DNA of 64,000 nucleotides, from the NCBI GenBank assembly GCA_964035545.1, contig OZ037770.1:3814662-3878661 (forward strand). The letters are read 5' to 3'. Source of the DNA: Bugula neritina (Eukaryota > Animalia > Bryozoa). The notes beneath the pieces were generated by a model. That model saw only the letters and a list, made by a program, of their open reading frames with translations, did no database searches and was not told the origin of the DNA. Both the position numbers and the translations under genes were made by a program. Of the stretch, positions 31,101-61,804 are shown piece after piece. Every line of letters begins with the position of its first letter. Positions within the stretch are counted from its first letter, which is position 1.

Positions 31101-34100
31101 CTACAAAATTACGATTTTTTCATAATTGGCGGCCATCTTAGATTTCTCAAAATGCTCAAGGATGGCTGGTTCACACCCACCTGAAAACATTCACTTGGAC
31201 CTTCAAGATAAAAGATCAAGGGAGAAAAAAACTTTATCCGAGATTGCTATATAATACAGTTATAATCAAATTATAATTAGAGAAACAAAGCTATCCTGTA
31301 TAAGTCTGCATGAAGTACTAAAAAAATATGTCGGGGAAAACACACTACTCTGTATCTTTTGCTCTACCATCATAATGTAATTTAACTGTGTAACTATTTT
31401 GCTGAAACAAATGAGTTAACAAATATCTTAAATGGTAAGTCTATAGTGACACACAAACCTCTCAGGTAGATCAGATAATTTACAGTTCCCCATATTCAAC
31501 TCTTTGAGTGATGTGAGTGATGACACAACTTCTGGTACTGTGTTGACAGGATTCCATCCTATGTGTAGTTTCTCTAACTGAGTCAGCTGACATAGACTGT
31601 AATATAAAGTGAATGATGAATGTAGACTGACTTATACATTTTATAATTGCAAAAATTGCTATAACTACCATATAATTATGACGGATACGACAACTACATG
31701 TACCATCACCTTGTTTCTTCACTACACCTTTATTCAACTTATCATGACACTGGACTACTATATAGGTGAAAATATATTAATGTACCATAATGGTATACAA
31801 CTATTTAGGGAGCAGCCGTGGTCTAGGGGTTAGAGCGTTTGCCTAGTAAACACGAAGGTCATGGGTTTGAGCCCAGACAAAGGCCATTAGATGATAAAAG
31901 GAAAAGCATCCAGTCATAATTGCTCCTGTGCCTCATTTAAACAAGTCCTTAGCCCGATTTATACAGGGATAGTGACTATAAATTTGCGTGAGAAAAAAAT
32001 GGTATACAACTATTTAATTATTATACTCAGTAAACACAAGTAAACTAGATATAATGACTTATAATCAATTACACTTTTTAACAGCGTAAGGATATACTAT
32101 AATACAATGATCGACATACCTTAAAACTATGGGGTTTTCACGTACATTATTGCAAACCATTACATACGTCATATATAGATGACTTCAAAAAAATACATTT
32201 TTTATTCTCCCACTTTATGTTGGCACACAATAATGTTAGTTGGTAAGTATATAAAGATGCCAATTATTGAATGTTTTTAAACAACTCATTAACTGTAATT
32301 GTAAAGTTAGCACTGAACATAATTTAATTCAAGCAGTAAAAGTAACATAGTGTAATGAATACGTAATAGTTAATCAAGCATTCAGCGTTGCGTTTAACAT
32401 AACGTTTCACTCAAATAGGCTATCACATCACTTGATTCCCGCCTACGCAGCGACTGCTAGTTGTAAATTCACTAATTAGATTGCAGCACGCCCTCGCCCA
32501 TTGGCTGTGGCTTTAAGCTTTGGCAGCCCGGATGTTTCAGTGCAGACATTGAACCTACAGCTATAGTAGAATAGTAGCTGCTAGCGATGCAATTTCATCA
32601 CATCGATAACAATCAATTTTAAATGATATAATTCATAAAATATAAATTAATTTAAATTGGAATTAACTTAAAGAAGCACGGGTTAGTTTTGTCTTTCAGT
32701 ATTTGTAATAATTTGAGGCTTTCCTTAAGTATTTTTATCTATTTTTAGCTAGATAAGAATAACTATTTGGTTTATTAAACATGTTTATAAGTTTGACAAT
32801 TTTTAGAATGCTAGTGCGGTCAGTGTATGATAGAATGTATGGCTATGTGTTTACTTTTTAATAGATTTCTCATAAAATTACTACTCTAAAGGCAGGCTCT
32901 CTAGTGATTGATCAGTTTGGCACTAGATAGTATAAATATTCTAATTGGCAGTTAAAGCCTTATTTTTACACTTACATGCAGTATTTTAATGCAGCTACTA
33001 ATTCAAGTCAACATTGAATATAAGTTTTAATCCCTGTCTTTGAGCTATACATTCATTTTTACTAATTGTGTCAACATTTGTCTAATTGCAGTTATCACCA
33101 AATGTCATTTTTATTATAGTTTGATATTTTTTAGTAGACCTGTAATACCGTTTCATAGAAACAAACTCACCCTAGCTAGCCACTAAAAGAAGGCAAAAGG
33201 TGATTAATTCAAGATCTGTATACATGTTTGAATATTTTGCAACTTCATGAATAATTTTCTGTTTGTTTTATTTTAAAAACATGTTATAATTGCATATATT
33301 AATAACCTACTTTTACAGTTTTTTACGGCAGTTGGAATAAGTAAAAATAAAATACTAACACCAACACCATGCAGTACAACTCATTTATAGTTAGTGGTGA
33401 TGCTACAGTAAGTGACACAAACCTCTCAGGAAGAGTAGATAATCCACAGCTCATCAGATTCAACTCTTTAAGTGACGTGAGTGATGACACAACTTCTGGT
33501 ACTGTGTAGAGAGGATTATCTTCTATGTCTAGCTTCTCTAACTGAGTCAGCTGGCATAAACTGTAATATAAAGTGAATGATATATATTCAGTGTGCACTA
33601 CCATAATATTTTATATTATATTAACCTATTGTCTTAAACCAGGTAAAATTATATATACACTATATGCAACTTAACTACCAAACAACTTATTGTAGCATAT
33701 AGTACATGTTGCAAAGCATGAAAATGTAGCAGTTTATTATTATAGCATAAAAGTATTCAATTATTGTAGTCATTGAATGCTAAAAAACTACAACTAACTG
33801 CTAACTATTAATTACACTTTCATATCACAAGAATATAATATAATGGCATACTTTAAAATTATGTTATTTTTACAATACTATGAACTATTACATATAATAT
33901 ATTCCTTTAAAAAATGCATTTCATGTTTCTCAATTATATAATGACATACTGTAATACTACTTGGTAAGCATAATATGAAGATGTCAAATATTGAATGCAT
34001 GTTTAAAAAAACAAAAACAATGACACAAACCTCTTAGGTAGATTAGATAATTCACAGCTCCTCATATTCAACTCTTTAAGTGATGTGAGAGATGACACAA

Positions 34101-36949
34101 CTTCTGGTACTGTGTCGAGAGGATTCCATCCTATCTCTAGTTTCTCTAACTGAGTCAGCTGACATAAACTGTAATATATAGTGAATGGTATATGTAGTCT
34201 ACTGTATCATATGATGACATATTCTGTAGCTACTCAGTTATAATGTAAATTATGTAGTAAACAATTTTGTTGAGACAGGGCACAACAGAAAGATTATATT
34301 ATGGCATGTTATAGGTGTAATGGATGCCCTGTGTAGAGTTGACTGATTAGATTTGTTTATAAGGTTAGCCTGTTAGTTTAGTTATAGATAAAGGCTACTC
34401 TACAATGTAATGCTATATGGCATGACTGTAATAAATAGTATACAATATTATAGCTGATCTGACATAAATTAGACCCAATTTGTCATTTTGATAAATCTGT
34501 TATTTTTGGATTTAGCGTCATATAATATATATGTATGCCTCCTACTTGTACATGTATGTGATATAGTACTATGCTACACATATACTGTTTAGTATGTTAC
34601 CTTTGGTACTCAACTATATGAAACACGCTTATATTGATGATATAATATCCATAACAGTAAAAACAGTTTTGTACTGTTTATAAGTTCTACAACTGTTTTG
34701 GCTTGTGTAGATACAATGTTTTGCTTATTACTATAGGTTTATATACTGCATGATAATATTATAAGTAAGAATGTGAGTGAAGACAGTTAACACAACTAAA
34801 TTTATTTGACAGCTATACCGCAGAAATACTTACTTGTCTAGACTTGCTCTGTCAGTCAGGTTAGAAACACATAGACACAGGGCTTTACCAGCAATCTCTC
34901 CAATGTTGTTTGGAATTCTCCCTTCCAGTTTGAGATATGTGATATGACAACTTCCAACTTCACGTTTTACCTCAGCAGTATTGTATGATTTGGTAATAGC
35001 ATACTGTATATCTGACCAGTCTACGAGAGACTGACCAGAATGTCTGAACCAAATTCTTATATTCTCTGTAACATTATACAGTGACAGTGTAATTACTACA
35101 CAGTGCCAGCAGGTGTTGCCAGGCAGCTTTAGGTTTACGAAATAAATAGATCACTGATTCCTGAAAACAACCGTTTTATTTAAAATCTTTGAAATTATGC
35201 TGCTTCGGTTTCAATAAAAGTCCCCCCGAGTAATACTAGCATATTATATTCTTTGCTATACAATTTTAAAAAAATAGTTTGAATGTTGATTTAAAGCAGC
35301 CAAAATTAAGCCGTGTTAGTATTTTATATTCACTAATAATTGGTCCAAATACCAACATAAGTTAAAACTTTCTATATCTGACACTGCGTACTCCCTATAC
35401 CCTATCAGTTACACAGATGACAGCTGTACAGGATGATCATAGATATACTCGAACTAGCGTAGTTAGAGCACTTTCTGAATTGTGGAATCTAGAGCTATAT
35501 AAGTATTTCAATGTTTCTCATATTTCAACTATAGAAAAAAGCATACCAATATAGAAAGGTTTCTGAAAAGTCTTGTCACAATAACATTCTTGTCAATTTA
35601 GATGAAACATTTGCTAGTTTTGCTCAAATAAAAAGAAAATTTATGCATTGAAAACCAATATAACTGATTGCATTCGAAATAATATTCAAATGAATGCCAA
35701 GTATACTGCATATAAATACAAATAGTGCGATAACATTGGCATACACCATGTGCTACTCTCCTTCCCTCAATCGCCTTTGGACCATGTAGTTTACTTACTG
35801 TTCTACAAACAAACCGGCTACATATCTCTATCCTTAACTGACATTTGCAGGCATGCTGCACCATTATTGTAACTAATGAAAGATTTTTACCTGCACCTCC
35901 AGCCAAATCTGTGTAGTATTGTCGTACAGCATATAATCCTCTTTCGCAGACTTCTAGTGGAGGAGATGTAAAGGCATAGCAACCCTGTGTTATGAGAAGA
36001 CTAAGATGTGTTAGCTGTAGTATCTCAGGGTTCAAAGATGTCATGGATCTGTTGCTGGATATATTCAGTGTGTGCAGATTACTCAATGTACACACTAAAG
36101 ATGGGAGACTAGTGAAGTCATTAAATGATATGTCTAGTATCTGTAACTTCTGTAGACTCTGTAACCTAACGATACATTATAAGTGTATAGTCAGCAAACT
36201 AGAGGTAAGAGAGATCTACTAGCTGTCATGAATATACAAAGATATTAAAGTAATAGAAGAGATAGTAAGAAGTAGCAGTGACTACAGTGTGATTATTATA
36301 TAACACCCTAACTATTTGGAGTAGTACAATAGAAAGGTGATATTTTAGAATTTGCTCTTTGCCCTTTGCCCCATGCATGCATGAGGTATTACAGAAGATA
36401 TGTCAGATAAAACACAATACTCTATACTATATTACTTTACATTCATAATGAATAGTTTGACTGTGTGACTGTTTTGCTGAAATGAATGAGTTCACAAATA
36501 TCTTGAACAGTAATTCTATTGTTACAGACAGACCTCTCAGGTAGATCAAATAATTTACAGCCCCTCATACACAACTCTTTAAGTGATGTGAGTGATGGGA
36601 CCACCTTTGGTACTGTGTTGAGAAGATTCCAATTTGTTTCTAGTCTCTCTAACTGAGTCAACTGACATAGACTGTAAGGTAAAGTATATGATATATGTAG
36701 TTTGACTTAGACAGAGGATAATTATAAGAGTTGCTAAAACTACAAAAAATTATGAGAGATAAGATAACTACTATATCAAGTTGATTGTCTCTTCACAACA
36801 GTTCTATATTCACCTTATCATGACACTTGACTAATATGTGAATATATAACAGTGTATTATAATAGAGTACAAGAATTCAACACTTAGTAAATACTAGTAA
36901 ATTAGAAATGACTGCAATAACTGTTAATCACGTTTTTTATAGCATAGGA

Positions 36950-37029
<80 letters not shown>

Positions 37030-37072
37030 ATATATATATGTATATATATGTATATATAAATGTATATATATA

Positions 37073-37126
<54 letters not shown>

Positions 37127-37269
37127 TACATATAGACATATATACATATATACATATATACATTTATACATATATACATATATACATATATACATATATA
37201 CATATATACATATATACATATATACATATATACATATATACATATATACATATATACATATATACATAT

Positions 37270-37349: not shown

Positions 37350-40300
37350 CTATATATATATACATATGTGAGTGTGCGTGCGTGTGCACGTGCATGTGTC
37401 TGTAACTTTAATAAATTTAATTTCATATTTTTCAATGACATACCATAATAATACTTGGTAAGCATATAGAGTTGTCAAAGATTGAATGTTTTAAACAATA
37501 CAAAACCTGTGACACAAACCTCTCAGGTAGAGTAGATAATTTACAGCTCTCCATATCCAACTCTTTAAGTGATGTGAGTGATGACACAACATTTGGTACT
37601 GTGTTGAGAGGATTCCATTCTATGTTTAGTTTCTCTAACTGAGTCAGCTGACATAGACTGTAATATAAAGTGTGTGATTTATATGTAGTCTGCATTAATA
37701 TATTATTTTATACAATAATCACATTTGGTTTTCAACCAGGTAAAACTATATACAACCTTACTACCAAGCAACTTATTATAGCATTGTACATGCAGAGCAT
37801 GAGAAGTTAACAGTTTATTATAATAGTATACAAGTATTCAATTATTATATATACTCAGTGTGTGAATACTAATCAACTATACAACTGCTTACTATTATTT
37901 ACATTTTTATAGCATAAGAATATATAAAGACATACGTTAAATTCGGTTATTTTCACAATATTACGGACCATATTTCATATAGAAATGACAAAAATTGCAT
38001 TTCACATAATATTTCTTCAATTATATAATGACATGCCCTAATTATACTTGGCAAGGAACTATTTTAGGGTTTTAACCTGTGACAAACAAACCTCTTAGGT
38101 AGAGTAGATAATTTACAGCTCCCCATATCCAACTTTTTAAGTGATGTGAGTGATGAGACAACATCTGGTACTGTGTTTAGAGGATTCCTTCCTATGTCTA
38201 GTTTCTCTAGCTGAGTCAGCTGACACAGACTGTAATATAAAGTGTATGATTCATATGTAGTCTGCATTACTATAATATTTTATACTATATTCACATTTTG
38301 TTTTCAACCAGGTAAAACTATATACAACTTAATTACCAAGCAACTTATTGTAGCATTGTACATATGCAGAGTATGAGAAGTTAACAGTTTAATATAATAG
38401 TATACAAGTATTCAATTATTATATATACTCAGTGTGTGAATACTAATCAACTATACAACTGCTAACTATCATTTACATTTTCATTGCACAAGAATTTATA
38501 ATGGCATAATTCAAAATTATGTTATTTTCACAATAATACAGACCAAATTTCATATATAATTCAAAACATTTGCATTTCACATATTTTTCAATTATATAGT
38601 TATACAAACTAATAATACTTGGAAGGAACTATTTTAGGATTTCAAGTATTAAATGTTTCAAACAATACAAAAACTGTGACAAACAAACCTCTCAGGTAGA
38701 GTGGATAATTCACATCTCTTCATATTCAACTCTTTGAGTGATGTGAGTGATGACACAACTTCTGGTACTCTGTTGAGAGGATTCCAGCCTATGTCTAGTT
38801 TCTCTAACTGAGTCAGCTGACACAGACTGTAATACAAAGTGTGTAATATATGTAGTCTACTGTATCATATAATGACATATTCTGTACTCTGCTATATAAT
38901 GTAAATTACGTAGCAAACAATTTTGTTGAGACAGGGTACAGCAAAAAAAAGCTATTATCTCATGCTGTAGGTGTAATGGGTGCCCTGTGTAGAATTGAGT
39001 GATTAGATGTATTTGTATAAAGACATCCTGTAAGTTTAGTAGATAAGGGCTACATCTACAATGTATTGCTAATATATAGTATGATTTATAATAATAAATG
39101 GTTTACTTTGTTATAGCTAATCTGACACAAATTAGCATGTATTTAATATTCCGAAAATCTTGTATTTTTAAGTATATGGCTACATATAATATGCTTATAT
39201 ATATTATGTGTTACAAATATAAACCTTCTGTATAATCCTACATGTATACATGTACTACATATAATATGTTACTTCTGTATTCAACTACATAAAACATATG
39301 TATTAATTTAAGATAGCGTATGTAACACTACAGACAGTTTCCCACTGTCTAATTTCTACAACTCGTTCAGCTGGTAGAGATACAGTGTTATACATATTAC
39401 TATAGCTTTCAGTATATATTTTCCTAGAATGTTGTTTAGAGACATAAAAAAACTGCCTATGCACAACATACTTTGCATCTGTTTAGTATCTCGTAATTAG
39501 ACATAAAAAAATCAAAGCCAATTATAAGGTAAAAGACCATAATACTGTACTATCATTGGATAGTTCTTCATCAATAAACAGGTAGTCGCCAGTGGTGGAT
39601 ATGAACCCCTCCTAGATGTTTCTCGTATTTCTTCCTCAAAAAACATTTTCATTAAGCCAAAAAGAAATAACAATACACCTCTTTAGTTGACACTTTTTAA
39701 TTTCTGACTGATATTTCACCTTATTTCCAATTATAATTAACTTTTAACCGGCACTTTTCTTTGTAGTAATTCCTACCCTTTAGACTGTGTACTTTGAAAT
39801 GAGTCTGTTTTACTTGTTACATAAAGTATAGTTGCACTGGCTACAGGTTGACACAAAAGCAAGCCTATCTTGATAAAATCATGCGCAATTGTAGAAACTA
39901 TCGAGGAGTTTGTTCCTCATAATTAGAAATTGACAAATTATTTTTAATCCGTTTAAAAGCATCTGGTTAGGGAAGCATATGCCGTGTTCAATTTGTTATT
40001 CTAGCATTAACAATAACAGAATGCAATAATTATAAGTTTATGAAAGTAATTTGTATTCTTTCTAATTACAAATATAATATTTTAGTATAATATATTGTAA
40101 ATTTATAAGGCTTGCATTAGGAATAACGCAGCTAAAACATCATTTTCCTTAAAGCCTTAAAAATATATAAGTATAACATAATACACTATGCCAATAAACT
40201 TATTAAAGTACCAAGCAAGCTTAGCTAGTTTAAGAAAAATTACACTAGGTAAATTACCATTATTTATAGAATGCTTGCTGATATTAGCTTTTGATGTAAT

Positions 40301-43300
40301 TAAAGTAAATTATTATTTATCTTTCTAGCTAAGGATTTCTTGCCGTAAGTTTTGCTTTTATGCATGGAGAAATGTCGTAACAAACGAGTTAAATTTTTAT
40401 AGCACATAAAAATGTAATCTATAAGTCGAAGATATTTAAACTTAGCCATTAACTCATTTTAATTAGAAATGTAGCCTAAATCTAATACAATACAAAATAT
40501 ATACCAGTATATATAATATATTTTTACCATGCTGTTAATTACAGTATTTGTAAGACAAATTTTATGCTCATTAATTAAATGCAACAAATATTTATAAAAT
40601 ACTAATAATGTTGAATAAATAAATTCAATAATTCCTTTTCTATTTAAATGGCTGCATAATTTCTTGCAAGGTTGTATAAAGGAGTTGTGGCCCACCACTT
40701 ATTATGTGTTCAATTGTCATATATGTCTTAGGAAGAAGAAAACTCCCCAAAAATTCTTAGTTTGAAAATTCTAGTATAATTAAAATCACTTAATATATGT
40801 CTTTGAAATGCATTTTGCCACTCTGCAAAGTTGCAGGAACAAATATTGCATGAAGTAATAAATGATTTATGAAGTAATTAACAAACCAATGTAAAAACTG
40901 TTGTTGTATATAGAACACAACATATTGATTTTCTTCAATTTCCACATCAAATCTATATATATTCAATTATATCTAACCAATGCTAATAAACTAAACATGC
41001 ATGCATACAAATATTTGCATCATGTGCAAGTAATATTAGCTAATTAGCAACTATAGCATTTTTTTCATTATCTTTATTGCTTGCATATGTCTAAGTATTA
41101 TTAAAATAAGGTTTTTATTTGCAACTTTGCACCACAAATTACATAAAATCTAAAAACTTAAGTTGTGACATAGGGCTACCTATACACAAATAGACCTTCA
41201 TAAAACTCTCAATGATTTTATTCAACTCATGTATGCAAAAGTTTTGCTTTAAAACAATTCTTCTAAACCACCCTAGAGCAGGGAATTATTACAAAAACAG
41301 CTTCTCATATATAATCTTTCCCCAGATTAATTTTTTTTCCTGTATTTAAACTAACTTAGCAAGTGAAGATTGTGATATCACTCAGGTAATCACATATATA
41401 TTATTCATAGCTGTAATACTTTAGCAATGAATAGATCATGTTTAATTTCCACTCTACCTAGCAGTTTTTCAGAATTATAGAGCTATGTATATCGTGAAAT
41501 TGGAATAGCCTAATAGTTTTACATGTGTTTATATAGCTAGTCAAGTTAACTTAAAAAGCTTACAATAATTAGATGATATTTGCATTCTTTTGAAGGTTAT
41601 GGTGAAGCTACTGCAAAACTGGCCATTAGTTTAGCATAATTTGCAATGCCACGCAAAAGCATGCCAAACAAGCAATGTTTATTTACCTTACCAGTGCAAT
41701 TTTATCACCTTAAACACAAAAGCAAGTATAAAATACACATCCATATTAGATTAACTGTCAAGTTAAAAAAAGACAACATATATTCATGAGCTGGTTCTGT
41801 TTGCACAAGTACAATTTAGACCAGCTTATTATTTAGATTGCCACAAGAATATGACATAAAATATGTCTTTAATCATTATTTTGATATTCACTGGTTGAAG
41901 ATATTTTTTATATCCTAATATGTAAATATTGTACATAAATCTTAAAAATTAACTAGGTGAATAAGGAAAACTGCTAATTTTATGAAACTGTTATGTTAAT
42001 AAAGACAATGGCTATCAACAAATCCCACCAGACCACAAACTAATTGTAAATACTAAAGCAATTATATAGTGCTATGTGTTGATCTAGCCTAGTCAATACA
42101 CCACAAATATGTATTATGACATACCACATTTTAAGTACTGGGTTACCATTTATTCTAATGGGTATTTGTTTAAACTGTTATATACAGCTTTTTGCACTAC
42201 CAATATACAAGCCAGTTGTTATTCTGTCACTTTTTATCTACATCTCTTTTTAATGCCAGTTACTTGTTAGCTTCAGTACAAACAGCTAAACATTCTACTC
42301 TACAGCCAATCTTACTGTTAACTCTTGTTTAACAATATTACAAGAATCTAAAAATTTGGGTGTGTTTTAAGTATAATATTCTATCATTATAACTTTTAAA
42401 TGAAACAATAATATGATAAATGCATTATAACTTTCTGAAAAGTTTGTTTGCAAAGTATATGTTTTTGGAAAATAGTTTTACAACATTTGCTAGGAGCATT
42501 ATATTTATTCCTATCTAAAATAATTTTGTTTGAACTGCTATGTTTGTAATCATGTAATCAGAAGTAAAGCATCAGTAAAATGAGTATAAGTAGAAGCTTG
42601 ACAGCTACATTAGGCATTGCTACATAGTACATAAATGTATGGCCGTATTAAATACTTAGCTGCATTCACAGATAAATGCATGGCTTGGAATTACAATACC
42701 ATGAATACATTATTTATTTAGCTGGGTAACTATACAATTATGCCAAAGTGAAAAGCCTTTGGTTATTAATGCCTGAAATGTCTAACAATCTACTTGGGAG
42801 TCCACCTTGTTGTTACAGAGTGAATGAGTTATTTGTTTGGCATTTGGATGATGGCACAAAGAAAGGCTATTTGGTTTGTTACTTGAGACTAGTAGCAAAC
42901 TGCTACAGTCATAGCATCTTAGAAGATTTTGCATCACTTGCATCACTGCGTACATTATTTTAATGTAGCTATTGAAATTAATATCTCACTGAAAACACAG
43001 TATTGCAAAATCTTAAGCTGTACATAATTATATTATGCATCAAAAAGTACTTCTGCTATTCGACTATCCCAGGTTTATTTTAAACTAGCACTGCCAAAGT
43101 GCCTTGACTCTATTACAGTGTTTACTAGCTAATTTTGTTCTTCTCAATAGTGAAATAGATCTATTGCAAGAAATTAATGACTAGATATAACAATAATTAT
43201 TTTTAGGCAAGACTTTCGCATCTATATTGCTCATCTGCTAGCTTGAAATACCCCTCTCCTTGGACTAATCTCAGGCATTTCATTGTTGTTTAAACAGTTT

Positions 43301-49300: not shown

Positions 49301-52300
49301 AATAATAATGATATACAACTATATTAGTGCAGTTGGTTCTATTATTAGATTAGCATATCGATTATGACTTTTCGATTGCCACCCTGATACTATGAGTAAA
49401 ATGTACAAGCATACGTGAAAGTATAGATATGATCATAAGTATAAAAATAGGTATAAGTATAAATATAAATATAGGTACAAGTATAAAACGAATGATTATA
49501 TTATTAATAATATTAGTCAGTGATACCTATAACCGTAATGGTTTTTAGACTTACAGTTATCATTAACATTAGCTGAGTAATATGATTAGTTAAAATAATG
49601 GTATTCATTAATATATCATAGTTATAAGTTATAACTCTAGTCTCTAAAGAGCAACAGCAAGTGTAATTGGGATATTCATATTAAATTTCATATTCACATA
49701 GTGCAATGTTTATGTTATGAACTAATTTATTTCTTCAACATTTAACTATAAATATGATTAACACTAACTTTGACCAGCAGTATTACTAAAAGAAGCGTAT
49801 TACACATATAAGATAATAAAATTCTAGTAGTGGGACTAATAGTATTACTAGGTCCGGTATTATTCTTGTTATCTTATTCATCATTCATGAGTTATCAAAT
49901 TTAAAATTACTACTTATTAGCATCGGCATATAAAAAGTAAGATCATTAGGAATAATTATCATGAGGTATGATCTATGATTTGCATTATCCATATATAGTT
50001 TAATACCAATATGATATATTATTATTGCTGATAGTCTATGTTATAGTTAAATTTATACTTATCTTTACAGTTACCTATAGTAGCACTTATTAGTTATTTG
50101 TGGTAGCCAAACTAATGTTTAATATTAATAAATTAAACTGAGTATCATAAAAGTGTTACTAAGAATTTTAATTATAATCGTAATGGTGATCATATTACTT
50201 TATTATAATTATTATATTTTATCATTAATGCTAAACTGAGTTAATGTATATACTTTGAGTTTTACTATTACTCATTATATTTACACTTATAGTAAAACTA
50301 AATATGTAAAAGTTATACTTATACTATTATTATTCGTATTTCATTAGACTTACATCTAAGATCGCAGTCCTATTACTACTACCACTGATACTAGTACTAC
50401 AACTAGTACTAGTACTGCTACTAGTACTACTACTACTACTACTAATAGTACTGCTACTACTACTACTACTAGTACTACTACTAGGTCTACTACTGTACTA
50501 GTACAACTACAAACTTTGAAAATAACTGCAAGAAAGGTATGACTTACTCTTTTTCTTAGTCTTACTGTGACTCTCAGTCGTAATGTAAAATAAAATTGTG
50601 AACTGTAAAGTTAAACCCAAGGCTGAAATTTATTTAATTAAATTTAGACAATCTGAATCATTGGCTCAATCCTTGAGTTTGACTATTACTATTATTATTA
50701 GTGTTACGATTGTGATTATCATTGGCATTATCATTATGATTATGATTATGCCATTATCATTATGATTGTAATTGTGGTAATTCTAACATTAATTATAATC
50801 ATAAATTAAAAGGTAATGATTAATGATAATTATTTTCATTTTGTAATCATAATGATAATCATAATGATGTAAATTTTGATGTAAAACCAAAATACTAAAA
50901 CTAAAAGTAAAAGTTATAAAATTAAATGATAAAATATTATAATGATAATTATAATTATTATATTTATTATATTATTATTGAATATATTATTTTATTAAAA
51001 AATAGGTTGCAGCTTAGCATGATTAAAATTCAGTAAAAATTAGTTTACCAACAGCAAACATGCATGCGTCTTGTCAACATTCAATTCGTAGTGCCATAGC
51101 GAAGCCAGATTACTGGTAGTACGACTACTAGAACTACTACTACTAGTGATGGATTACAGATCCCTGGCGATTTTAGCTGTGAGTGACCTTCACCTCACAT
51201 TCTCGTCATGCGCGCGGTATTAGACTAAGTAGAGGGTATAAAGCACTGAGCTGGAAAAGAAATAATATATTTTAATTATAGGTAATACTAATAGTAATAG
51301 TAATAGTCATATAAATTTAAGTTATATTTACTCATTACCGGCAATCACAATGGCAATAGTAACTTAAATTGTAACAGTAATGGTATGGGTATGTTTGAAA
51401 TTGTCACTATCAGTATTGTTATGAATCAAAATATAATGCTATCATACCAATAATTTAAAATAATATTACAAAGCTTCAGTAGCAACTTTTACTTGTACCA
51501 GTTTGGAATTTTGAATTATACATATTCTTAGTTAAAGTCTTCAAGTTTATTGTCAAAATGAACTTGAAATTAAAGACTTAGTAGTAAAAATTAAACTAAG
51601 ACTGACTGTAAGTGACTAAGATTAAAAATAAGTAATTTTAAATATCGATTTAGTATTTTTCTTACTCTTTGTCTTAAAATTGACTTTTATTTTGCACCTA
51701 CTCCTGGTCAATGATTCTTTTTTCTATTTATATTACTATTGCTATTAGTATAATTGACTTAAATTTAATAATAGATATGATTATATCTTTATAGATGTGA
51801 TATTTGATTTTATGAATAGTAATTCGAAAACTCTTTGGTATTATTTATTTTTGATCATTGTAGTTATTATCATTATATTTGTATAATAATTATGATTATC
51901 AAATTCAATATCGATATTTGTATTATGGTATGGATATCTGCCTCCATCCCATGTTCTGTTTTGCAGTGCCTTTTTACATTCACGTCTAGGTTCACATTGC
52001 GATGGTCATACTGATAGCACTTGGGGACAGTGATGAGCATAATGATTATCACTAATATTAAGATTATCGTTATTAGGATTTAGAATAATTTAATAAACAA
52101 GCAACTAAAAACAAATGTTTTTACTAATATACATATTAATTACTAATATAAATATACTACTATGAATATTATAATTATTATACTTTACAATTCAAAGTAA
52201 GATAATCATTTTACAAACTGGTAAAACTAAATATAAAGTAAATGTAATAATACTAATAGTAGTTATCCATTCCCCTTTGGTTTCACATACTAATAATTGG

Positions 52301-55300
52301 AAACCTCTGTCCTAATATTATTTCTATTAATATTGCTCAAAGTTTGATCCCTATTTAATTTTATAGTTCACTCACCAGCTACATAATTTTATTAAAATAC
52401 ATGTGGTATTGGTTATAGTACTAGTGAAACTTGAAGTTGAATAGCATGCTTATTACTCACTGCTCTTTGCTTACATTATTAGGGTTACTCTTTAGTCTTA
52501 GAGATACCCTAACATAAACTTGAAAGCTGCAGGTAGTACTAGTCTAGTGCTGTGTTAATCCTACACTGTTGACTTATCAACACTGTGACTATAATTATGA
52601 CTCCTAAGTCAAAGTCATTTTCATATAGTAGTAATCACTATGACAGACTGAAAGTCAGGAAGACTAAATATAATGGTAAAGTGTGTAAGAATAAATCATA
52701 CTTAATCAATTACTTTTAGTTTTGTTACCAGTGTTGGGTCAACTTTCAGAATAAAGAATAAATATAATTATAAAGATAAATGGATAAATATTCCAATCAT
52801 GGTTCAATGTGCCTATTTTAAGCTGTTAATTTAATTACTATAATATAAGTGCTCTAAATACAACTTTTGATTTTCATAATTATGTTTCAATTTAATACAG
52901 ATACCATAGTATCATATACAGTAGAATCAGTTGTATCCTATTTAATAATGAAGTAACTTATTGGAGCTTTCACAGTTATTAATCATTCACTTGTTAGTCT
53001 TTGAACTGGGACAATGTTTGAAACTTGAAGTAGAATGAAGTTTGATTTCAGTTACCGCAATGGTATCTGCAGTCACAATAGGAATACGCATATAACTATG
53101 TTTATATTTGTGAAAAATATATAGTCAAAACTAGATAAGGTAATAGTAATTATAATTGGTTTCACTTTTAATATATTCCTATAAACTGGAAAATAGACAG
53201 AAGCATTTAATCATGAAAGTAAACCTAGTGGAAGTAAATCAATTCACTAAGTATAGTAAAATATTTACTATTCAGTAAGTTTATTTACTTTAGTTAATTG
53301 TACTTGATTATTTCTGTCGGTTTTTCAGTTGATTTTTCTACCTTTTGCTATAGCATATCAAACTACCACAAAGTCATGCTTCCGTATTACAATTATAAAC
53401 ATAGTGTTACTGTGTAATGTTATAGTAATGTAATAGTAATATTTGGATCATTGTAAGTATTTCTGTTGTTGTACTGATTGATAAATATTTTTTAGCTTGC
53501 ATGGATATTTGCAACGATCAAGATGTCATTTGAACCTGGACTGGAATAAAGATGGCAAATCGAGAAGCTAGCTACAATTATTCTGCAAAAAGAAACTTGG
53601 TAAGCAAAAATAAGCTGCAGCATTAATCAGTAAGCAATATGACGATGAACTTTGCTTGATTTTGATTGACCTTAAAATATCTGGTCACCTTTCACCAACG
53701 TGGTCCTGCGCGGGTGGCGGGTGACCTTAAAATGTCTGTTGCACGTAAAATAAATTTTGTGACAGTCAAAAGTATGCTGATCTTTTTCGTATTTCAGTGC
53801 ATCAGTGTCTTAGCTTAAGAGCTGAACCCAATAATTATGATCTAAAGCTGTTTTTTACTGTCTTTCTGATTATTCTTGGTTTTTCAGCTTGATGAATTGA
53901 ATAAATGGATTTGATTTCGGGTATTATGTAATGGATGAAAGAAATTTTTCTTAAATTTGTACTGAGCAATTTTTGCTATTGCTATGATGTTTAGTGATAA
54001 AATTGCACCCTTAATAACCCTGAAAATTATCATTACTAGCATTTGTTTATGTTCATTTTTAGGAAATTAAAATGAAGACACAACTCACCGATGCTATCTC
54101 ACTGTGCCTGCATGCAGTTCATCTAAAAAGGTACTCCTATTAGCTGGCTCTTGCCCAATACCTGGTTGTCTCTGTAACTATTTTTTGCTCACAGATGAGT
54201 TTTTTGAACTTGACATTTTATTGATTTTGAAAGTTATAGTGAGCTTTGAACTTGCTAGCATCGTTTTTAAAGACTTGCTGCAGTTTTTATCAACATTTTT
54301 TAAGTAAATGGTGTTAGTCTGGAAGCTCTCTCACTCCTCTCTCTGTCTCTTTCTCCCACACCTTCCACTCAACCTCTCTCTCTTTCTCTCCCTCTCTCCC
54401 ACCCTCTGTCTCTCCCACCTTCTTCCTCTCTCTCCCACTCTCTGTCTCTCCCACCTTCTCTCTCTCCTAACCTTTCTCTCCTCCCTTTTCCACTATCTCT
54501 CTGACTCTCTCCCTTTCTCTCTTCTACCCCATCTCTCTTCCATCCTCTCTCCTAACCGTTCTCTCCCACCCCCCTCTCCCACTCTCTTTCTCTCTCTAGT
54601 TTGCATGGCTTTACCCAATTTTGGTTTATTTTTTATTTTGTTTCAGAGTATCCAAATGGAAAGCTAAAATTTATTTAATATATATTATACCAAATTGAGC
54701 TTTACATATGATATCAAATAAATGCTGTGTTTTGTTAAAATCAATGTTTGCAACTTTGTAGTATATTCAAATTCATAATTTATTTGTAGAGTCACACAAC
54801 AAGACACTACTCTGACACACTCACAAGTTGCCACTGATCCAGCAGTATAGATGATTGTTTTCTCCACTGGCTATGCTGTCACGCTTTACTGATGTGGTGT
54901 TTGAAACAAACCAATTGTTTGCCTACGCAGACTAGGGTGAGAAAAAAAGTGAGAAATGAAAGCTGTTTTTAATACCAACTACACTTTGTTTTTATTGAAT
55001 GAAAAACAAAGTGAAGTCATTAGTTATCAGTTAAATGACTAAATCACTGTTTATAAAGATGAAACACAAATAATCTTATAATATGCTAATGAAATTTGGC
55101 TTTCAAATAGCTTTTTTCTGTATATTTGTCGAGGAAGTTTATCTTCAACAAAACTTCGTAGCTGTTGAATATGTGGAGAGTATTTTATGTTGCATAAATT
55201 TATAGAGTAAAAGGTTCTAATCAAAATTTTTCAACTTGGCTCATCTACGGTTTAAAATTGTGAGTCACCCTTCACACTAGAGTTTTATAAAGTTTTAATG

Positions 55301-58300
55301 AATGTGCAGTATTTCATAAAATATTGTGTGTCTCGTAAATTTAGCTATTTATACCTTTACAGTGAGATTGGAGTAAACACACCTCAAAATTCACATCTGG
55401 TATCACATTGATTTATCGCAAGTCAAAGTACACCTACTAACTCGTCCTTCCTTAATACCTGCTTGCTTTTGCACTTCTACTCATTTCATATACCTAACAT
55501 TTTTCTTGCAGATGAATTACATCTTTTAAGTTGTAAAAGCCTTAAATAGCATGAAATTAATGAGGTTTAAACCGTGGCCACACTAACTATTGATGCGTTT
55601 AATACACGAAAATATTGTCTCTTTTTTTTTAGTTTCACCTAAAGTATTACATACTATTGATGGAGGCTTTGCTGAAGTTTTTGGGTGATGATTTGTCAAT
55701 AATTTTCCAGAGAAGATGATGCCACGATGGCTGGCGTCATTATGCAATTTCCAAATTTCTTTCGGCTTTGCTCTAGTGAAAATGTTAGAAAACAATCAAC
55801 AAAAAGGTTTGTACCATAAACAAAGTTATTGTGTGCATGTTGCCAAAGCATAAAGTGTGCTGGACATTTTTAAGTTTCTGTTGAGTTGCGTTTATGCTTT
55901 TCCTGCATGAAAAAAGTTCCAGTTTCAGTTAATATCACTAGCGGAGTGCCCACCTATATTTTAAATCATATTGATGCATAAGTTCTTTTTGTAATATTAA
56001 ATGTATAACTTGCTTAATTGCTATTCAATGCCCTTTGAAGTTTCCAACTGTAATTAATTAGTTGATTTGGCAGCATAGTATCGATGATTGATGAAGGCAG
56101 CCTATATAATTATAAGCACAAATATCTATATCTACATGAAGATGTCATTCCCAATGATTGTTATTCTGAAATCAGCTGATTAAGTTATCACAAACTAGAC
56201 ATTTTGACCAGCGGCTTTTACAATGCAACTCGGTGAAATTTCAGACCTAGATAAATTGAATTTCTTACTGAAAATCGTGAAGGTATTAAAGTTTAAAGTG
56301 AAAGTTTAAAGGGTCATCTCTCTGCGAATTATAATAGCATGGTGCCAATTAGACTTGAAAAAATTTCAAGGCACTATAAAGCACTAAGCCCATTCTTACA
56401 AGTAGTTTCAAAGTGCACTGGAATTTCAGTTTACTTGTCATTGTATAGAATCCTGATCTACACTATATAGCATTCACTATTGCCTGCTTCTTCTAAGCAT
56501 CTATAATGTATTAACTACAGTTTGCTTTGAGAAGTGAATTTCTACTTGGTATTTTTTCCTTATCGTTCCGTTGTTTGCCAGTAGTCTTAATTTAATGGAT
56601 TTTCCCTTTTCAAAAGTGGTTGTGACAATCAAACACATCATGCAGCCTGCAACTACACAATCAGTCAGTAATTTCTTCCATTAAAGTAGCTCTTCTGGTT
56701 ACTCTTGCTCACCTAAAAGCGTGAGCCTCATTCAAATTGCAAGTTTTTAGAGTTGTTAATTTTTCATGCAGTCTTTCATTTTTTTTTGTTAGGCACAAAA
56801 TTAGTATTCACTAGACCTAATATTTCATCTGCATGTATGCCTATTGTTTGTTCATTAAAGAAAAACCTCTGCTGAATATTGAACTAATAATGAAAATGAA
56901 TTCCCTAAACTAAAAGTAGCAGTGTGATTTTGGTATTACAATTAGTTGTTAGCATAGAGTCAAGTTATTGACGGGAATTTTCAAATTGAAATGAATGAAT
57001 TTCATTGTAAGTCAGCAAGATTTAGTCTAAGTAAACATAGCATTACATCGTGTTTTATTTAGCATTTGTAGAAGGCAGCATATATTTTAAGGATGATTGT
57101 AAACTTAAATGTAATTTTAAGTACTTTCCATGTTTGTTATTGTAGATGGTCTTGTTCTTTGGGATGGATGTGACAACTCCTTGTGTCAAACTTAACTGAT
57201 TGACTACTGAATCCCAATCATACGTTTTGCCAAAAAATGTGAAAATGGAGTGCATGTCTACTTTATTTGGGAAAATATTAAAAATACTTTTGAAACTTCA
57301 TCTAGCCAAACAATACAACAGTTTCATTTTATTAAAAAATATCATTTGCCCAAAATGTATTATGTAATCGAACAATTTCTAGAAAAAAAGTGCTTTCCTC
57401 CAGTTTTGCTAATGAATTACATATTTCATTACATGCTTGTCTTTATAATTTTATTAATTGTTTTTTCTGGTGAGTCAATTAAAGTCAATTCAACCTAGAA
57501 AAGTCTGAATTTCAGACCTAATTTCAAGCTAGAATATTCACATTTTTAGGTCTGCTGCGTTTGCAAACATTGTTGTGTTACTTTACTTTTTATATTTTTT
57601 GAAATAAATATCTTTTTAGCTTGTGCCTATTCATGATTAGAATAGTATAATAATATTTAACTTTTCTTCAATTTTAATAGATGAAAATGTTGATCAGTTG
57701 GAGTATTCAGTTTAGCTGAATTTTACTTGCTTCTGCGAAAACAATCTTTTGGAGTTGTCTGCCCTCTCTTTAGGTAATTTTTTGACCTATGGTTAACGTA
57801 ATAATTATAACTTTTTAAAGATGCATGTGAACCTAACAATATAGCATAACTATCAAACCACATTATTCAATATCTGCATAAAATTTAGCCGATAAGCTGC
57901 CACCCAATGAGCTTGAAAAGATATTAGAATTCTAGCTCAGTGCTGCCATCAATGTAGATATTTATAATGATATAAAGCCAAAACTCATTATTGCATGAAA
58001 GTATCTAACCATTCCTGACAAAGAATAGAGATAATAACTCCAAAGTTGGTCAGTTGAAACCACAGCAATAATACTTTAATCTTTATACCAAGGGTTTAAT
58101 TTTATACCAAGCCCCAATAAGTACATATCACTATGACAACACAGCCTAAGCACCTCCAATGCAAGAAATTTAGTATTGTGGTGCTACAAATCCTCCAGTT
58201 ACAAATGAGTAGAGCTTTCATGATTATTGGTCTACCATAATGTTTATTTAGTTTTAAGGACTAGCATAGATGCTATTATATGTGGGAGGTATTTGAAAAG

Positions 58301-60796
58301 CTTCCAACTCCATCTTCAACTACGGGCTATTATAATTATGCCGATAAACGAGATACTACACTCAGACTGCCCTGTTATAGTACTATGATTGGCTACTGCA
58401 AAATTTTTGCCGATAGACAACATTTAATTATGATGTAATGTATCTCGTATTGGTACATAAGTGTTATGTCTGAGGACGAGATACTGTGAAATTATGCCCT
58501 GATAGCTTTATATACTGCATGAATACATCATGAGTCAGAATATACTTCAGCATTAGCTTAGATACACACATCGTGGGTGATAATTACCACAACTAAACTC
58601 ATTTAACATTTACACAGCTATCATAATTGATACTTACTTGTCTAGACTTGCTCTGTCAGTCAGGTTAGAAGCACGTAGACGCAGGGCTTCACCAGCAATC
58701 TCTCCAATGTTGTTTGGAATATTCCCTTTCAGTTTAAGATCTGTGATATGATAACTCCCAACTTCACGTTTCACCTCGGCAGTAGTATATGATTTGGTAT
58801 TAGAAGACTGTATATCTGACCAGTCGACAGGAGGCTGTCCAGAATGTCTGAACCAGATTGTCATATTCTCTGTAACATTATACAGTGACAGTGTGATTAT
58901 TACACAGTGCTTGCAGGTGATGCCTGGCAGCTTTAGGTTTACGAAAGTGAAAATTAGAAATAAGTAGATCACTGATTCTGAAAACAACCGTTTTATTTAA
59001 AATCTTTGAAATTATGCTGTTTCGGTTTCAATAAAAGTCCCCCCCCCCAGTAATACTAGCATTTTATATTCTTTGCTATACAATTTTAAAATAGTAGTTT
59101 GAATGTTGCTTTAAAGCAGCCAAAATTAAGCCAAGTTAGTATTTTATATTCACTAATAATTGGTCCAAATACCAACATTATGTTAAAACTTTCTATATCT
59201 GACACTGCGTACTTTCTATACCCTATCAGTTACACAGATGACAGCTGTACAGGATGATCATAGATATACTCGAACTAGCGTAGTTAGAGCACTTTCTGAA
59301 TTTTGGGATCTAGAGCTATATAAGTATTTCAATGTTTCTCATATTTCAACTATAGAAAAAAGCATACCAATATAGAAAGGTTTCTGAAAAGTCTTGTCAC
59401 AACAACATTCTTATCAATTTAGATGAAACATTTGCTAGTTTTGCTCAAATAAAAAAAAATTATGCATTGAAAAACAATATAACTGATTGCATTCAAAATA
59501 ATATTCAAATGAATGCCAAGTATACTGCATCTAATTTATACAAATAGTGCGATAACCTTGGCATACACTATGTGCTACTCTCCTTCCCTCAATCGCCTTT
59601 GAACCATGTAGTTTACTTACTGTTCCACAAACAAACCGGCAACATATATCTATCCTTAACTAAAATTTTCAGGCATGCTGCACCATTATTGTAACTAATG
59701 AAAAATTTCTACCTGCACCTCCAGCCAAATCTGTGTAGTATTGTCGTACAGCATATAATCCTCTTTCGCAGACTTCTAGTGGAGGAGATGTAAAGGCATA
59801 GCAACCCTGTGTTATGAGAAGACTAAGATGAGTTAGCTGTAGTATCTCAGGGTTCAAAGATGTCATGGACTTGTTGTAGGATATATTCAGTGTGTGCAGA
59901 TTACTCATTGTGCACACTGAAGATGGGAGACTAGTGAAGTCATTAAATGATATGTCTAGTATCCGTAACTTCTGTAGACTCTGTAACCTAACGATACATT
60001 ATAATTCTATGGTCAGCACAAACTAGAGGTAAATGTGATCTACTTGTTGTAATAAAGATACAAAGATATTAAAGTAATAGAAGAGATAGTAAGAAGTGGC
60101 AGTGACTACAGTGTGATTATTATATAACACCCTAACTATTTGGAGTAGTACAATAAAAAGGTGATATTCTAGAATTTGCCATTTGCCATTTGCCTTTTGC
60201 CCCATGCATGCATGAAGTATTACAGAAAATATGTCAGAGAAAACACAATACTCTACACTCTATTACTCTACATTCATAATGTATAGTTTAACTGGGTGAG
60301 TGTTTTGCTGAAATGAATGAGTTCACAAATATCTTGAATAGTAATTCTATTGTTACACACAGACCTCTCAGGTAGATCAGATAATTTACAGCTCCTCATA
60401 CGCAACTCTTTAAGTGATGTGAGTGATGGGACAACCTTTGGTACTGTGTTGAGAAGATTCCAATTTGTTTCTAGTCTCTCTAACTGAGTCAGCTGGCATA
60501 GACTGTAAGGTAAAGTATATGATATATATGTAGTTTGACTTATACAGAGGATAATTATAAGATTTGCTAAAACTACAATAAATTATGAGAGATATGATAA
60601 CTGCTATATCAAGTTGATTGTCTCTTCACAACAGTTCTATATTCACCTTATCATGACACTTGACTAATATGTGAATATATAACAGTGTATTATAATAGAG
60701 TACAAGAATTCAACACTTAGTAAATACTAGTAAACTAGAAATGACTGCTATTACTGGTAATTATATTTTTATAGCATAGGAATATATATATATATG

Positions 60797-60883
<87 letters not shown>

Positions 60884-61804
60884 ATATATATATATATGTA
60901 GATATGTGTGTGCGTGTGTGCGTGCGTGCACCTGCATGTGTCTGTAACTTTGAAAAAATTGAATTTCATTTTTTTCAATGACATACCATAATACTACTTG
61001 GTAAGCATATAAAGATGTCAAATATTGAATGTTTTAAATAATGCACATTTTATGACACACAAACCTCTCAGGTAGAGTAGATAGTTTACAATTTGCCATA
61101 TCCAACTCTTTAAGTGATGTGAGCGATGACACAACTTCTGGTACTGCGCTAAAAGTATTCCATCCTATGTGTAGTACCTTTAACTGAGTCAGCTGACATA
61201 GACTGTAATATAAAGTGTATGATATATATTTAGTGTACATTACTGTAATATTTTATACTATATTCACATTTTGTTTTTAAACAAATAAACCTATATACAA
61301 CTTAACTACCAAGCAACTTATTGCAGCATTGTACATGCAAAGCATGAGAAGTTAACAGTTTATTATAATCGTATACAAGTATTCAATTATTATATATACT
61401 CAGTGCATGAATACTAATCAACTATACAACTGCTTACTATAATTTACTTTTTATAGCACAAGAATACATAATGGGATATACCTTAGAATTCTGTTATTCT
61501 CACAATATTACAGACCATATTTAACATGGAACTAAAAAAAAATTGCATTTCACATGATATTTTTTCAATTTTATAATGAAATCCCCTAATTATACTTGGC
61601 AAGGAACTCTTTTATGATTTCAGGTATTAAATGTTTCAAAGAATACAAAAACTGCGACAAACAAACCTCTCAGGTAGAGTAGATAATTCACAGTACATTA
61701 TATTCAACTCTTCGAGTGATGTGAGGGATGAGACAACTCCTGGTACTGTGTAGAGAGGATTCCATTCTATTTCTAGTCTCTCTAGCTGAGCCAGCTGACA
61801 TAGA
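20105..61804 (-). CDS. LRR-Roc-COR-caspase (ROCO-caspase) locus, multi-exon, may continue beyond the right edge
   Basis: Minus-strand exons in order: LRR 61667-61804, 61065-61202, 60365-60502; C-cap 59713-59987; N-cap 58638-58869; LRR 38689-38826, 38092-38229, 37520-37657, 36534-36671; C-cap 35891-36165; N-cap 34834-35065; LRR 34031-34168, 33423-33560, 31459-31596; Roc-COR 24149-26154; linkers 23778-23864 and 23422-23633; caspase 22016-22186, 21544-21757, 21109-21336, 20748-20851, 20105-20254. All junctions are phase-compatible provided the AAG acceptor at 23633 is used. Whether all three LRR modules share one transcript is unproven. Confidence 0.7.
23422..23864 (-). CDS. two linker exons between COR and caspase (23778-23864; 23422-23633, acidic)
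   Basis: [29 protein letters not shown] (phase 1-1), then DVQFVV...[27 protein letters not shown]...NTEK with a phase-0 donor matching the first caspase exon. The acceptor of the second exon is ambiguous. Confidence 0.65.
24149..26154 (-). CDS. 2006-nt exon: last LRRs + LRR C-cap + Roc GTPase + COR
   Basis: Acceptor TTGTTAG|G (phase 2), donor T|GTATGT (phase 1). [10 protein letters not shown]...VRQYY cap typical of ROCO/MFHAS1-like proteins; G1 [10 protein letters not shown]3 DMGGQEVY, G4 THKD; COR-like [28 protein letters not shown]. Confidence 0.92.
26679..31249 (+). mobile_element. decayed Academ-like DNA transposon in the intron before the Roc exon
   Basis: About 120-bp imperfect TIRs (26687-26810 versus 31134-31246). 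Transposase remnants [13 protein letters not shown] (about 27970), XPG/H3TH-like [10 protein letters not shown]...GK (about 29720) and LPPTDEA (about 29985). The paralogous intron (36166-36533) is only about 370 bp and lacks it. Superfamily assignment is from motif recall. Confidence 0.65.
29330..29690 (+). mobile_element. RTE-like LINE 3' fragment nested in the Academ-like element
   Basis: Degenerate [31 protein letters not shown], resembling the RGRPKKRWMD..KED C-terminus of RTE ORF2. Confidence 0.55.
31459..31596 (-). CDS. LRR cassette exon (module C)
   Basis: 138 nt, TTACAG|T...AG|GTTTGT; [45 protein letters not shown]. Confidence 0.88.
31808..31997 (+). mobile_element. tRNA-derived SINE
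   Basis: A-box TGGTCTAGGGG, B-box GGTTTGAGCCC, A-rich tail, 19-bp TSD AATGGTATACAACTATTTA (31789-31807 and 31998-32016). Confidence 0.85.
33423..33560 (-). CDS. LRR cassette exon (module C)
   Basis: 138 nt, phase 2/2; [45 protein letters not shown]. Confidence 0.88.
34031..34168 (-). CDS. LRR cassette exon (module C; absent from the ORF track)
   Basis: 138 nt, phase 2/2; [45 protein letters not shown]. Confidence 0.88.
34834..35065 (-). CDS. putative N-cap exon preceding the LRR cassettes (module C copy)
   Basis: 232 nt, TTACAG|AG...AA|GTAAGT (phase 1 to 2); [20 protein letters not shown]...[20 protein letters not shown]...[10 protein letters not shown]; paralog of 58638-58869; has ATA where the paralog has ATG. 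Confidence 0.7.
35891..36165 (-). CDS. LRR C-cap exon: truncated copy of the 5' part of the Roc exon (module B)
   Basis: Same acceptor and [10 protein letters not shown]...[10 protein letters not shown]...DLAGGAG; homology stops at about 35860, just before the P-loop; candidate donor CAG|GTAAAA at 35891. Confidence 0.7.
36534..36671 (-). CDS. LRR cassette exon (module B)
   Basis: 138 nt; [45 protein letters not shown]. Confidence 0.85.
36952..37367. repeat. compound (TA)n / (CATATATA)n microsatellite
   Basis: Direct reading; shorter counterpart at about 60782-60900 in the paralogous intron. Confidence 0.95.
37520..37657 (-). CDS. LRR cassette exon (module B)
   Basis: 138 nt; [45 protein letters not shown]. 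Confidence 0.88.
38092..38229 (-). CDS. LRR cassette exon (module B)
   Basis: 138 nt; [45 protein letters not shown]. Confidence 0.88.
38689..38826 (-). CDS. LRR cassette exon (module B; absent from the ORF track)
   Basis: 138 nt; [45 protein letters not shown]. Confidence 0.88.
44471..44870. repeat. about 400-bp fold-back element
   Basis: Inverted arms, for example AAATACACCTAAATAATCAAGG versus CCTTGATTATTTAGGTGTATTT, and GCTAATGAACA versus TGTTCATTAGC. Confidence 0.75.
46931..49300 (+). mobile_element. decayed R4/Dong-clade non-LTR retrotransposon (RT + RLE endonuclease)
   Basis: IFQGDSLS; HLLYVDDLK; YKYLGV...[17 protein letters not shown]; [16 protein letters not shown]; degenerate knuckle CGMC...HVLS; [13 protein letters not shown]...IIDITVP; AATAATAAT on both flanks, matching the (TAA)n target known for Dong elements. 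Confidence 0.85.
49301..53450. repeat. degenerate tri/hexanucleotide low-complexity tract including (TAC)n at about 50370-50510
   Basis: Pervasive ATT/ATG/ATC/ACT/AGT periodic runs; similar sequence at about 46150-46930 on the other side of the Dong element. Confidence 0.6.
54325..54597. repeat. CT-rich low-complexity tract
   Basis: Direct reading. Confidence 0.9.
55560..57780 (-). pseudogene. possible highly decayed hAT transposase remnant
   Basis: [10 protein letters not shown] (similar to the hAT dimerisation ERxFS..KRI motif) at about 55600 and CKSRWS (similar to TRWxS) at about 56210, in the expected order near one end of the 19-kb element. No continuous ORF. Confidence 0.35.
58638..58869 (-). 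CDS. putative N-cap exon (module B copy)
   Basis: 232 nt, phase 1 to 2; [20 protein letters not shown]...[20 protein letters not shown]...[10 protein letters not shown]; contains an ATG 5 nt after the acceptor. Confidence 0.72.
59713..59987 (-). CDS. LRR C-cap exon: truncated copy of the 5' part of the Roc exon (module A)
   Basis: 275 nt to candidate donor CAG|GTAGAA; read-through ends VTIMVQHA* at 59669. Confidence 0.7.
60365..60502 (-). CDS. LRR cassette exon (module A; absent from the ORF track)
   Basis: 138 nt; [45 protein letters not shown]. Confidence 0.85.
61065..61202 (-). CDS. LRR cassette exon (module A)
   Basis: 138 nt; [45 protein letters not shown]. Confidence 0.88.
61667..61804 (-). 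CDS. LRR cassette exon (module A)
   Basis: 138 nt; [45 protein letters not shown]. Confidence 0.88.

Follow-up and report, generated by a model that had tools for sequence, protein, structure and literature searches.

Cassette exons of a predicted LRR-Roc-COR-caspase gene family in a bryozoan, a proposed immune-type receptor

Animal LRR-Roc-COR proteins, e.g. MFHAS1, LRRK1 and LRRK2, are encoded by few conserved genes and carry a kinase or no effector. To our knowledge, none of them is fused to a caspase or has hypervariable cassettes. NLR-type receptors form large, fast-evolving families in invertebrates. The ROCO genes of the brown alga Ectocarpus encode LRR-Roc-COR proteins with shuffled LRR exons, for which an immune role has been proposed (PMC3341825, PMC11378527), and alternative splicing of these LRR exons has been reported (PMC11378527). 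Bacterial conflict proteins join LRRs, an AP-GTPase (Roc), COR and an effector; the effectors include caspases, and several paralogues occur per genome (PMC8195603).

The locus described here lies in 64,000 nucleotides of DNA from the bryozoan Bugula neritina, referred to below as the window. A preliminary description of the window had compared its LRR exons with those of Ectocarpus, and the analogy has turned out closer than was known at the time, since the bryozoan gene is itself a predicted ROCO. Both systems combine symmetric LRR exons of fixed length with recombination within and between genes, with diversifying selection acting on the LRRs, and with gene birth and death. Each Ectocarpus exon encodes one 24-aa LRR in 72 nt, whereas each bryozoan exon encodes two 23-aa LRRs in 138 nt. 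Inverted spare exons occur in the introns of Ectocarpus whereas none are present in 263 kb of bryozoan sequence, and a paper on the Ectocarpus ROCOs makes no mention of caspases whereas the bryozoan ROCO is fused to one. We infer an independent origin of the cassette design in an animal. The bacterial conflict proteins are similar in having fast-evolving N-terminal LRRs, Roc-COR and a C-terminal effector (PMC8195603); they are prokaryotic and intronless with many alternative effectors, whereas the bryozoan gene is spliced and has a fixed caspase-fold effector. Matches to bacterial Roco proteins are weak.

Of the systems compared, these two come nearest. MFHAS1, LRRK1 and LRRK2 have the LRR-Roc-COR fold in common with the bryozoan gene. 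The NLR inflammasome and apoptosome also combine an LRR sensor, a nucleotide switch and proximity activation of a caspase, but they use a NACHT or NB-ARC ATPase and recruit the caspase via a death-fold adaptor, whereas the bryozoan protein is predicted to have a Roc GTPase and a fused caspase. Membership of the NLRs was rejected on this ground, the nucleotide domain being a Roc GTPase and not a NACHT/NB-ARC STAND ATPase. Lamprey VLRs and arthropod Dscam similarly use modular LRR or Ig cassettes to present a variable binding surface. These are surface or secreted proteins diversified by somatic assembly (VLR) or mutually exclusive splicing (Dscam), in contrast to the complete germline genes and predicted cytosolic protein of the bryozoan. 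Membership of the VLRs was likewise rejected, because the germline genes are complete, their cassettes are exons joined by splicing, and Roc-COR-caspase follows the LRRs in the product.

Six-frame scans and self-BLAST place ten exons of 138 nt on the minus strand, from 61804 to 31459. Each has AG..GT ends, a 1+135+2 structure (phase 2/2) and no stop codon, and encodes two 23-residue LRRs (Pfam LRR_4). These exons were correctly recognized in the preliminary description, and the residues it listed at the variable positions of both repeats match the sequence exactly. It had further presented them as one array of ten interchangeable exons. Truncated Roc-exon stubs, extra first exons and a 19.1-kb insertion rule out a single array, and the exons cannot be exchanged freely within one transcription unit; they instead belong to three fused gene copies, in three blocks separated by two stubs, first exons and a mobile element, and the first stub is followed by a stop while the last first exon (N_C) is without an ATG. 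The complete locus has 13 cassettes in blocks of 6, 4 and 3. Three of them lie outside the window, so that blocks A, B and C have three, four and three cassettes inside it. All 13 have compatible phases, are open throughout and retain their splice sites. There are three front ends and one back end: front end A consists of N_A, six cassettes and stub 1, front end B of N_B, four cassettes and stub 2, and block C of N_C, three cassettes and an intact Roc-COR-caspase, which is retained in this copy alone. The features are summarized in Table 1.

Table 1. Features of the bryozoan ROCO-caspase locus, in window coordinates.
Feature	Position	Strand	Remarks
LRR cassettes A1-A3 and first coding exon N_A	window-equivalent 69030-71740		past window end
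LRR cassette A4	61667..61804	-	138 nt, phase 2/2
LRR cassette A5	61065..61202	-	
LRR cassette A6	60365..60502	-	96% identity to B4
Stub 1, truncated LRR-Roc exon	59681..59987	-	broken immediately before P-loop
First coding exon copy N_B	58638..58977	-	5' boundary approximate
Mobile element, ~19.1 kb, young	39410..58502	.	within intron following N_B
LRR cassette B1	38689..38826	-	
LRR cassette B2	38092..38229	-	
LRR cassette B3	37520..37657	-	
LRR cassette B4	36534..36671	-	
Stub 2, truncated LRR-Roc exon	35799..36165	-	homology stops ~35859
First coding exon copy N_C	34834..35160	-	5' boundary approximate
LRR cassette C1	34031..34168	-	
LRR cassette C2	33423..33560	-	
LRR cassette C3	31459..31596	-	
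Intact LRR-Roc-COR exon	24149..26154	-	2006 nt, phase 2/1
Linker exon	23778..23864	-	87 nt, phase 1/1
Acidic linker exon	23422..23633	-	212 nt, phase 1/0
Caspase exon 1	22016..22186	-	Pfam Peptidase_C14 3e-8
Caspase exon 2, catalytic His (THG) and Cys (EAC)	21544..21757	-	Pfam Peptidase_C14 3e-5
Caspase inter-subunit linker exon	21109..21336	-	
Caspase small-subunit exon	20748..20851	-	Pfam Peptidase_C14 weak, E 0.03
Last coding exon with stop	20105..20254	-	

In the intact LRR-Roc-COR exon, three LRRs precede a Roc GTPase that carries the G1, G3 and G4 motifs, and COR lies behind it. Roc is matched by its Pfam profile above the cut-off (E 1e-7), with GxxxxGKTS, DxGG and THKD kept in the alignment, and weak Pfam matches to COR-A/COR-B follow directly. 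The AlphaFold2 model of this exon has a pLDDT of 88. Its top Foldseek matches are LRRK1, the LRR-Roc-COR of the Chlorobium (C. tepidum) Roco protein and LRRK2 (E 1e-23 to 1e-17); the model aligns over 560-736 columns to the Roc-COR of LRRK1/2 and C. tepidum, and it also matches the isolated COR domain 3dpt (E 1e-10). Profile searches were run exon by exon, and frame continuity comes from phase arithmetic, by which the exons, from the cassettes onwards, share a single reading frame that ends at the stop at 20105. Because the LRR-Roc-COR exon continues in frame into the caspase exons, the gene is, by the features tested, a predicted ROCO protein with the order LRR-Roc-COR-caspase. A direct joint between LRRs and caspase is ruled out, since the Roc-COR exon sits between them. 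The coupling to a caspase proposed earlier is upheld by in-frame Peptidase_C14 exons with a His-Cys pair, although the Roc-COR GTPase had been overlooked. The short N-terminal cap leads directly into the LRRs and neither a signal peptide nor a membrane segment is visible by eye, and the product is predicted to be cytosolic.

The caspase motif of the window gene is EACSE, compared with the canonical QACxG, and both S1 Arg equivalents are seemingly retained, as judged by eye. The catalytic position is TGC (Cys) in the window gene and Ser in the other four of the five neighbouring genes read, whereas all more distant relatives examined have Cys there. Ser is encoded by TCC in one neighbour and AGC in three, and the use of two different Ser codons suggests repeated loss of protease activity. 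The family would accordingly be a mixture of candidate active and pseudo-caspase members, with the window locus among the candidate active ones. The predicted Roc-COR region is under purifying selection (pN/pS ~0.2-0.3).

Numerous relatives of the gene are found in the 216-Mb genome, which has at least 76 full-length paralogues of the Roc-COR exon. About 30 of these form a cluster spanning 3.7 Mb of C6, the contig that carries the window at 3814662-3878661. A caspase exon lies 1-16 kb downstream on the same strand of every one of the 76 Roc-COR exons. A 22-nt cassette pattern has 250 matches in the genome and the control has 0. Clusters of caspase-like exons unpaired with listed Roc exons occur on four other contigs (C2, C7, C8 and C9) and represent a further caspase expansion. 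Close homologues with up to 87-89% identity are present in JGI contigs. The nearest named homologues are from Watersipora subatra, auto-named ‘MFHAS1 homolog’; one of them, P0074, is an LRR-Roc-caspase whose two-LRR exons are 141 nt long and in phase 2 and whose caspase motif is QAC. The predicted fusion and the exon design are common to at least two bryozoan genera, because P0074 has the same fusion and exon type. More distant metagenomic relatives have two-LRR exons of similar type, 138-144 nt long. A metagenome search with the cassette alignment found no second haplotype; the two LRR loci that it returned are unrelated. A literature search, with most subscription papers outside its reach, found no study on ROCO and caspase in bryozoans or invertebrates.

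Detailed comparisons covered five neighbouring loci (263 kb contiguous) of the at least 76, giving a set of 32 cassettes. The x positions of the LxxLxLxxN/C motif make up the concave binding face of LRRs. The strong variation noticed earlier at these positions is confirmed: pN is 0.50 at the six x5/x7/x8 codons and 0.08 at codons outside the x class, with an overall pS of 0.15. Site models favour M2a over M1a (2dlnL 118), with 16% of the codons at omega 7.0, and likewise M8 over M8a (2dlnL 117). The selected cassette codons, 11, 13, 14, 18, 34, 36 and 37, coincide with the codon class chosen beforehand. This selection alignment is short (45 codons) and its tree poorly supported, whereas the pN/pS comparison is tree-free. 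When the two LRR halves are given their own trees each is significant (2dlnL 46 and 45, omega ~6), and in eight neutral simulations, of which seven re-dealt the tips at intervals of 1-9 codons, 2dlnL is mostly ~0 and never above 28. The site-model check proposed in the preliminary description thus yields omega ~6-7 at the predicted concave positions and withstands recombination controls, in agreement with a diversifying LRR repertoire in an invertebrate, here a bryozoan. The predicted concave-face codons are under positive selection, and these residues outpace neutral DNA several-fold, as those of immune receptors do.

The same cassettes also carry traces of movement between genes. The distance between cassettes is 0.140 within a gene and 0.137 between genes (permutation P 0.78), and near-identical cassettes occur in different genes (g5_4/g4_6 at 0.7% and g2_1/g1_1 at 1.4%). 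Correlation between the two exon halves is weak (r 0.27), and the types of intron found before and after an exon are re-assorted in many combinations. Within the exon, a PHI test gave no significant signal of recombination (P 0.08-0.23). Because belonging to the same gene does not make cassettes more similar, the data point to exchange of cassettes among genes in the germline. The pattern fits crossover and conversion using conserved exons as homology, and the recombination that had been suspected between cassettes thus gains support from the missing within-gene clustering, the shared cassettes and the re-assorted flanks.

The window locus itself has been extensively rearranged. In both stubs the Roc exon is cut at the identical base and joined to sequence upstream of a first exon. 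Stub 1 has an in-frame TGA four codons beyond the junction, whereas the frame of stub 2 is open up to a GTAAGT donor at phase 0; pN (0.035) and pS (0.042) between the stubs are near-equal. N_B has an ATG at 58864, a ~76-aa N-terminal cap and a phase-2 donor. N_C has ATA (35060) at the conserved start codon, which is ATG in all five other copies read, and an in-frame AG at 35126, so that read-through from B to C by splicing is possible on paper. The front of copy B is ~91% identical to C, and its first intron and its last cassette with stub are 90-93% identical to A. The simplest history would begin with a deletion that cut gene A at the Roc start and joined it to the front part of gene C. An unequal crossover would then have produced the hybrid copy B, into which a transposon would have inserted last. 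A sister copy (contig C6:3589303-3624303) comprises stub 2, block C and Roc-COR at 95-98% identity, with the stub junction found again at 3.62 Mb (98% identity) and a ~21-kb break within its C3 cassette near 3.6 Mb. Since only C retains Roc-COR-caspase and its start codon is ATA, a full-length protein would require either splicing that starts at an ATG further upstream and bypasses the stubs, or translation from a near-cognate codon; failing both, the locus would be decaying. Four neighbouring genes in the 263 kb each have a first coding exon, 4-6 cassettes, a Roc-COR exon and caspase exons. Two neighbours are broken, g1 by a stop and g4 by a frameshift, as expected under birth-and-death evolution.

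The 19.1-kb element has an 8-bp target-site duplication, and the corresponding site is empty in copy A. Copies at 96-99% identity, some partly inverted, are present on contigs C3, C5, C6 and C8. It is AT-rich with CAG..CTG ends and is without a clear long ORF; the target-site duplication and end motifs make it hAT-like. Its large size is unusual for a non-autonomous DNA transposon, and it may be composite. Several other elements were observed in the window. The intron between C3 and the Roc exon holds a ~4.6-kb dispersed repeat (26650-31250) with 82-86% identity to many copies, and a Pogo/HTH-psq transposase fragment (62836-63438) lies inside the 7.2-kb intron between A3 and A4. A Ty3/Gypsy-type retrotransposon pol ORF with RT, RNase H and integrase occupies 111-2561 (+), a second, fragmented LTR element lies at 13800-18000 (-), and a 38-nt minisatellite of 12.3 copies (98%) is found at 4269-4735. 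An ORF with a TPR-like end (12245-12637, +; weak Pfam TPR_19) overlaps a 21-nt tandem repeat and is probably an exon of an unrelated gene.

The cassette exons are likely to encode the LRR-based sensor arm of a cytosolic protein from a large bryozoan LRR-Roc-COR-caspase family, proposed here as an immune-type receptor diversified in the germline. A rather unlikely alternative is a combinatorial receptor, produced by Dscam-like splicing or VLR-like somatic rearrangement and including read-through of A and B into C. The phase compatibility, open frames and kept splice sites of all 13 cassettes would allow this, as would the phase-0 donor of stub 2 together with the in-frame AG of N_C, and the LRR exons of Ectocarpus ROCOs are reported to be alternatively spliced (PMC11378527). 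However, exon duplication by itself yields symmetric phase, and the exons are serial repeats of a solenoid in a layout without a mutually exclusive cluster. All 32 cassettes in the 263 kb read have the orientation of the coding strand and are preceded by a first exon and followed by a Roc exon or stub, and no inverted, orphan or spare intronic cassettes occur there. Contigs of three RNA-like runs cover exons and largely not unique introns, with joints at predicted sites between first exon and cassette in all three runs and between cassettes in one; these contigs are family-wide, so that the junctions are common to every member and not assignable to a locus. The cassette-to-cassette junctions argue for serial inclusion rather than mutually exclusive (Dscam-type) clusters. 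An apparent skip of cassette C2 in the RNA contigs was rejected as alternative splicing, as any cassette-cassette junction of any paralogue maps in this way. Finally, at least 76 genes, together with 250 matches to the cassette pattern, are already a source of diversity, and most of it is explained by these germline paralogues with their hundreds of cassettes. Less probable still is a new bryozoan class of intracellular one-chain receptors for immunity or for telling self from non-self, with both active and pseudo-caspase members, whose cassettes are also recombined per individual or zooid or spliced combinatorially, the fused loci serving as cassette pools for one effector.

Whether the window gene still makes a receptor is a separate matter, and the chance is not far below even that this locus is a decaying rearranged paralogue, with RNAs of A and B truncated or degraded by NMD, C without initiation, and its diversity ancestral. 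The TGA after stub 1, the ATA of N_C, the 19-kb insertion and the near-equal pN and pS of the stubs are consistent with decay, as are the broken neighbours and the broken sister copy. On the other side, Roc-COR-caspase is fully open with its dyad intact and a pN/pS of ~0.2 against neighbours, and every cassette is free of stops and splice-site loss. Decay of this one locus is compatible with the family-level explanation. A role in allorecognition or symbiont control (colony fusion and rejection, or the policing of a bacterial symbiont), in place of pathogen sensing, is improbable. A hypervariable LRR joined to a death protease would suit it, and the host is colonial, with bryozoan allo-incompatibility involving cell death noted in the literature (PMC8195603); but the predicted protein is cytosolic, its short cap running straight into the LRRs, and dozens of dispersed paralogues suit pathogen-driven birth and death better than a single-locus self marker. 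It is most improbable that the hypervariability is an artefact caused by recombination or by hot spots of mutation, or that mis-assembly created the triplication. The short alignment, poorly supported tree and repetitive region invite such doubts, yet the tree-free excess of pN (0.50) over pS (0.15) falls on codons specified in advance, the copies differ by 4-16% with no N gaps, the junction is seen at a third place (98%), and the transposon is flanked by a target-site duplication and missing from the corresponding site of copy A. Mis-assembly was rejected on the divergence of the copies, the recurring junction and the target-site duplication, and the artefact explanation as a whole is already largely refuted.

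The proposed germline-diversified receptor could work as follows. The LRR arm would bind a fast-evolving foreign or non-self ligand, and binding would relieve or trigger the Roc-COR switch, with nucleotide-dependent dimerisation. Dimerisation would bring the fused caspase domains together and activate them, and the cell would signal or die, making the protein a one-chain analogue of the NLR inflammasome. Proteolysis would not be the output of every member, because Ser replaces the catalytic Cys in four of the five neighbouring genes. Gene duplication, unequal crossing-over and conversion between near-identical exons would alter cassette number and content in the germline, selection would retain new binding-face residues, and the window locus would be one product of this turnover of cassettes and genes. 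The data establish the architecture, the symmetric two-LRR exons, positive selection at the concave-face codons and purifying selection in Roc-COR, as well as cassette exchange among genes and frequent gene breakage; the selection signature and analogy with known systems suggest an immune role.

An animal NLR-like recognition system thus appears to have been built from an LRRK2-type GTPase and a directly fused caspase, with an exon-cassette design that appears convergent with that of brown algae. The locus displays turnover in the form of gene fusion, unequal crossover, transposon insertion and start-codon loss. Caspase activation could serve as a natural one-chain read-out for the debated Roc-COR switch, and the family provides concrete candidates among bryozoan genes for a role in immunity, in the control of symbionts or in allorecognition between colonies.
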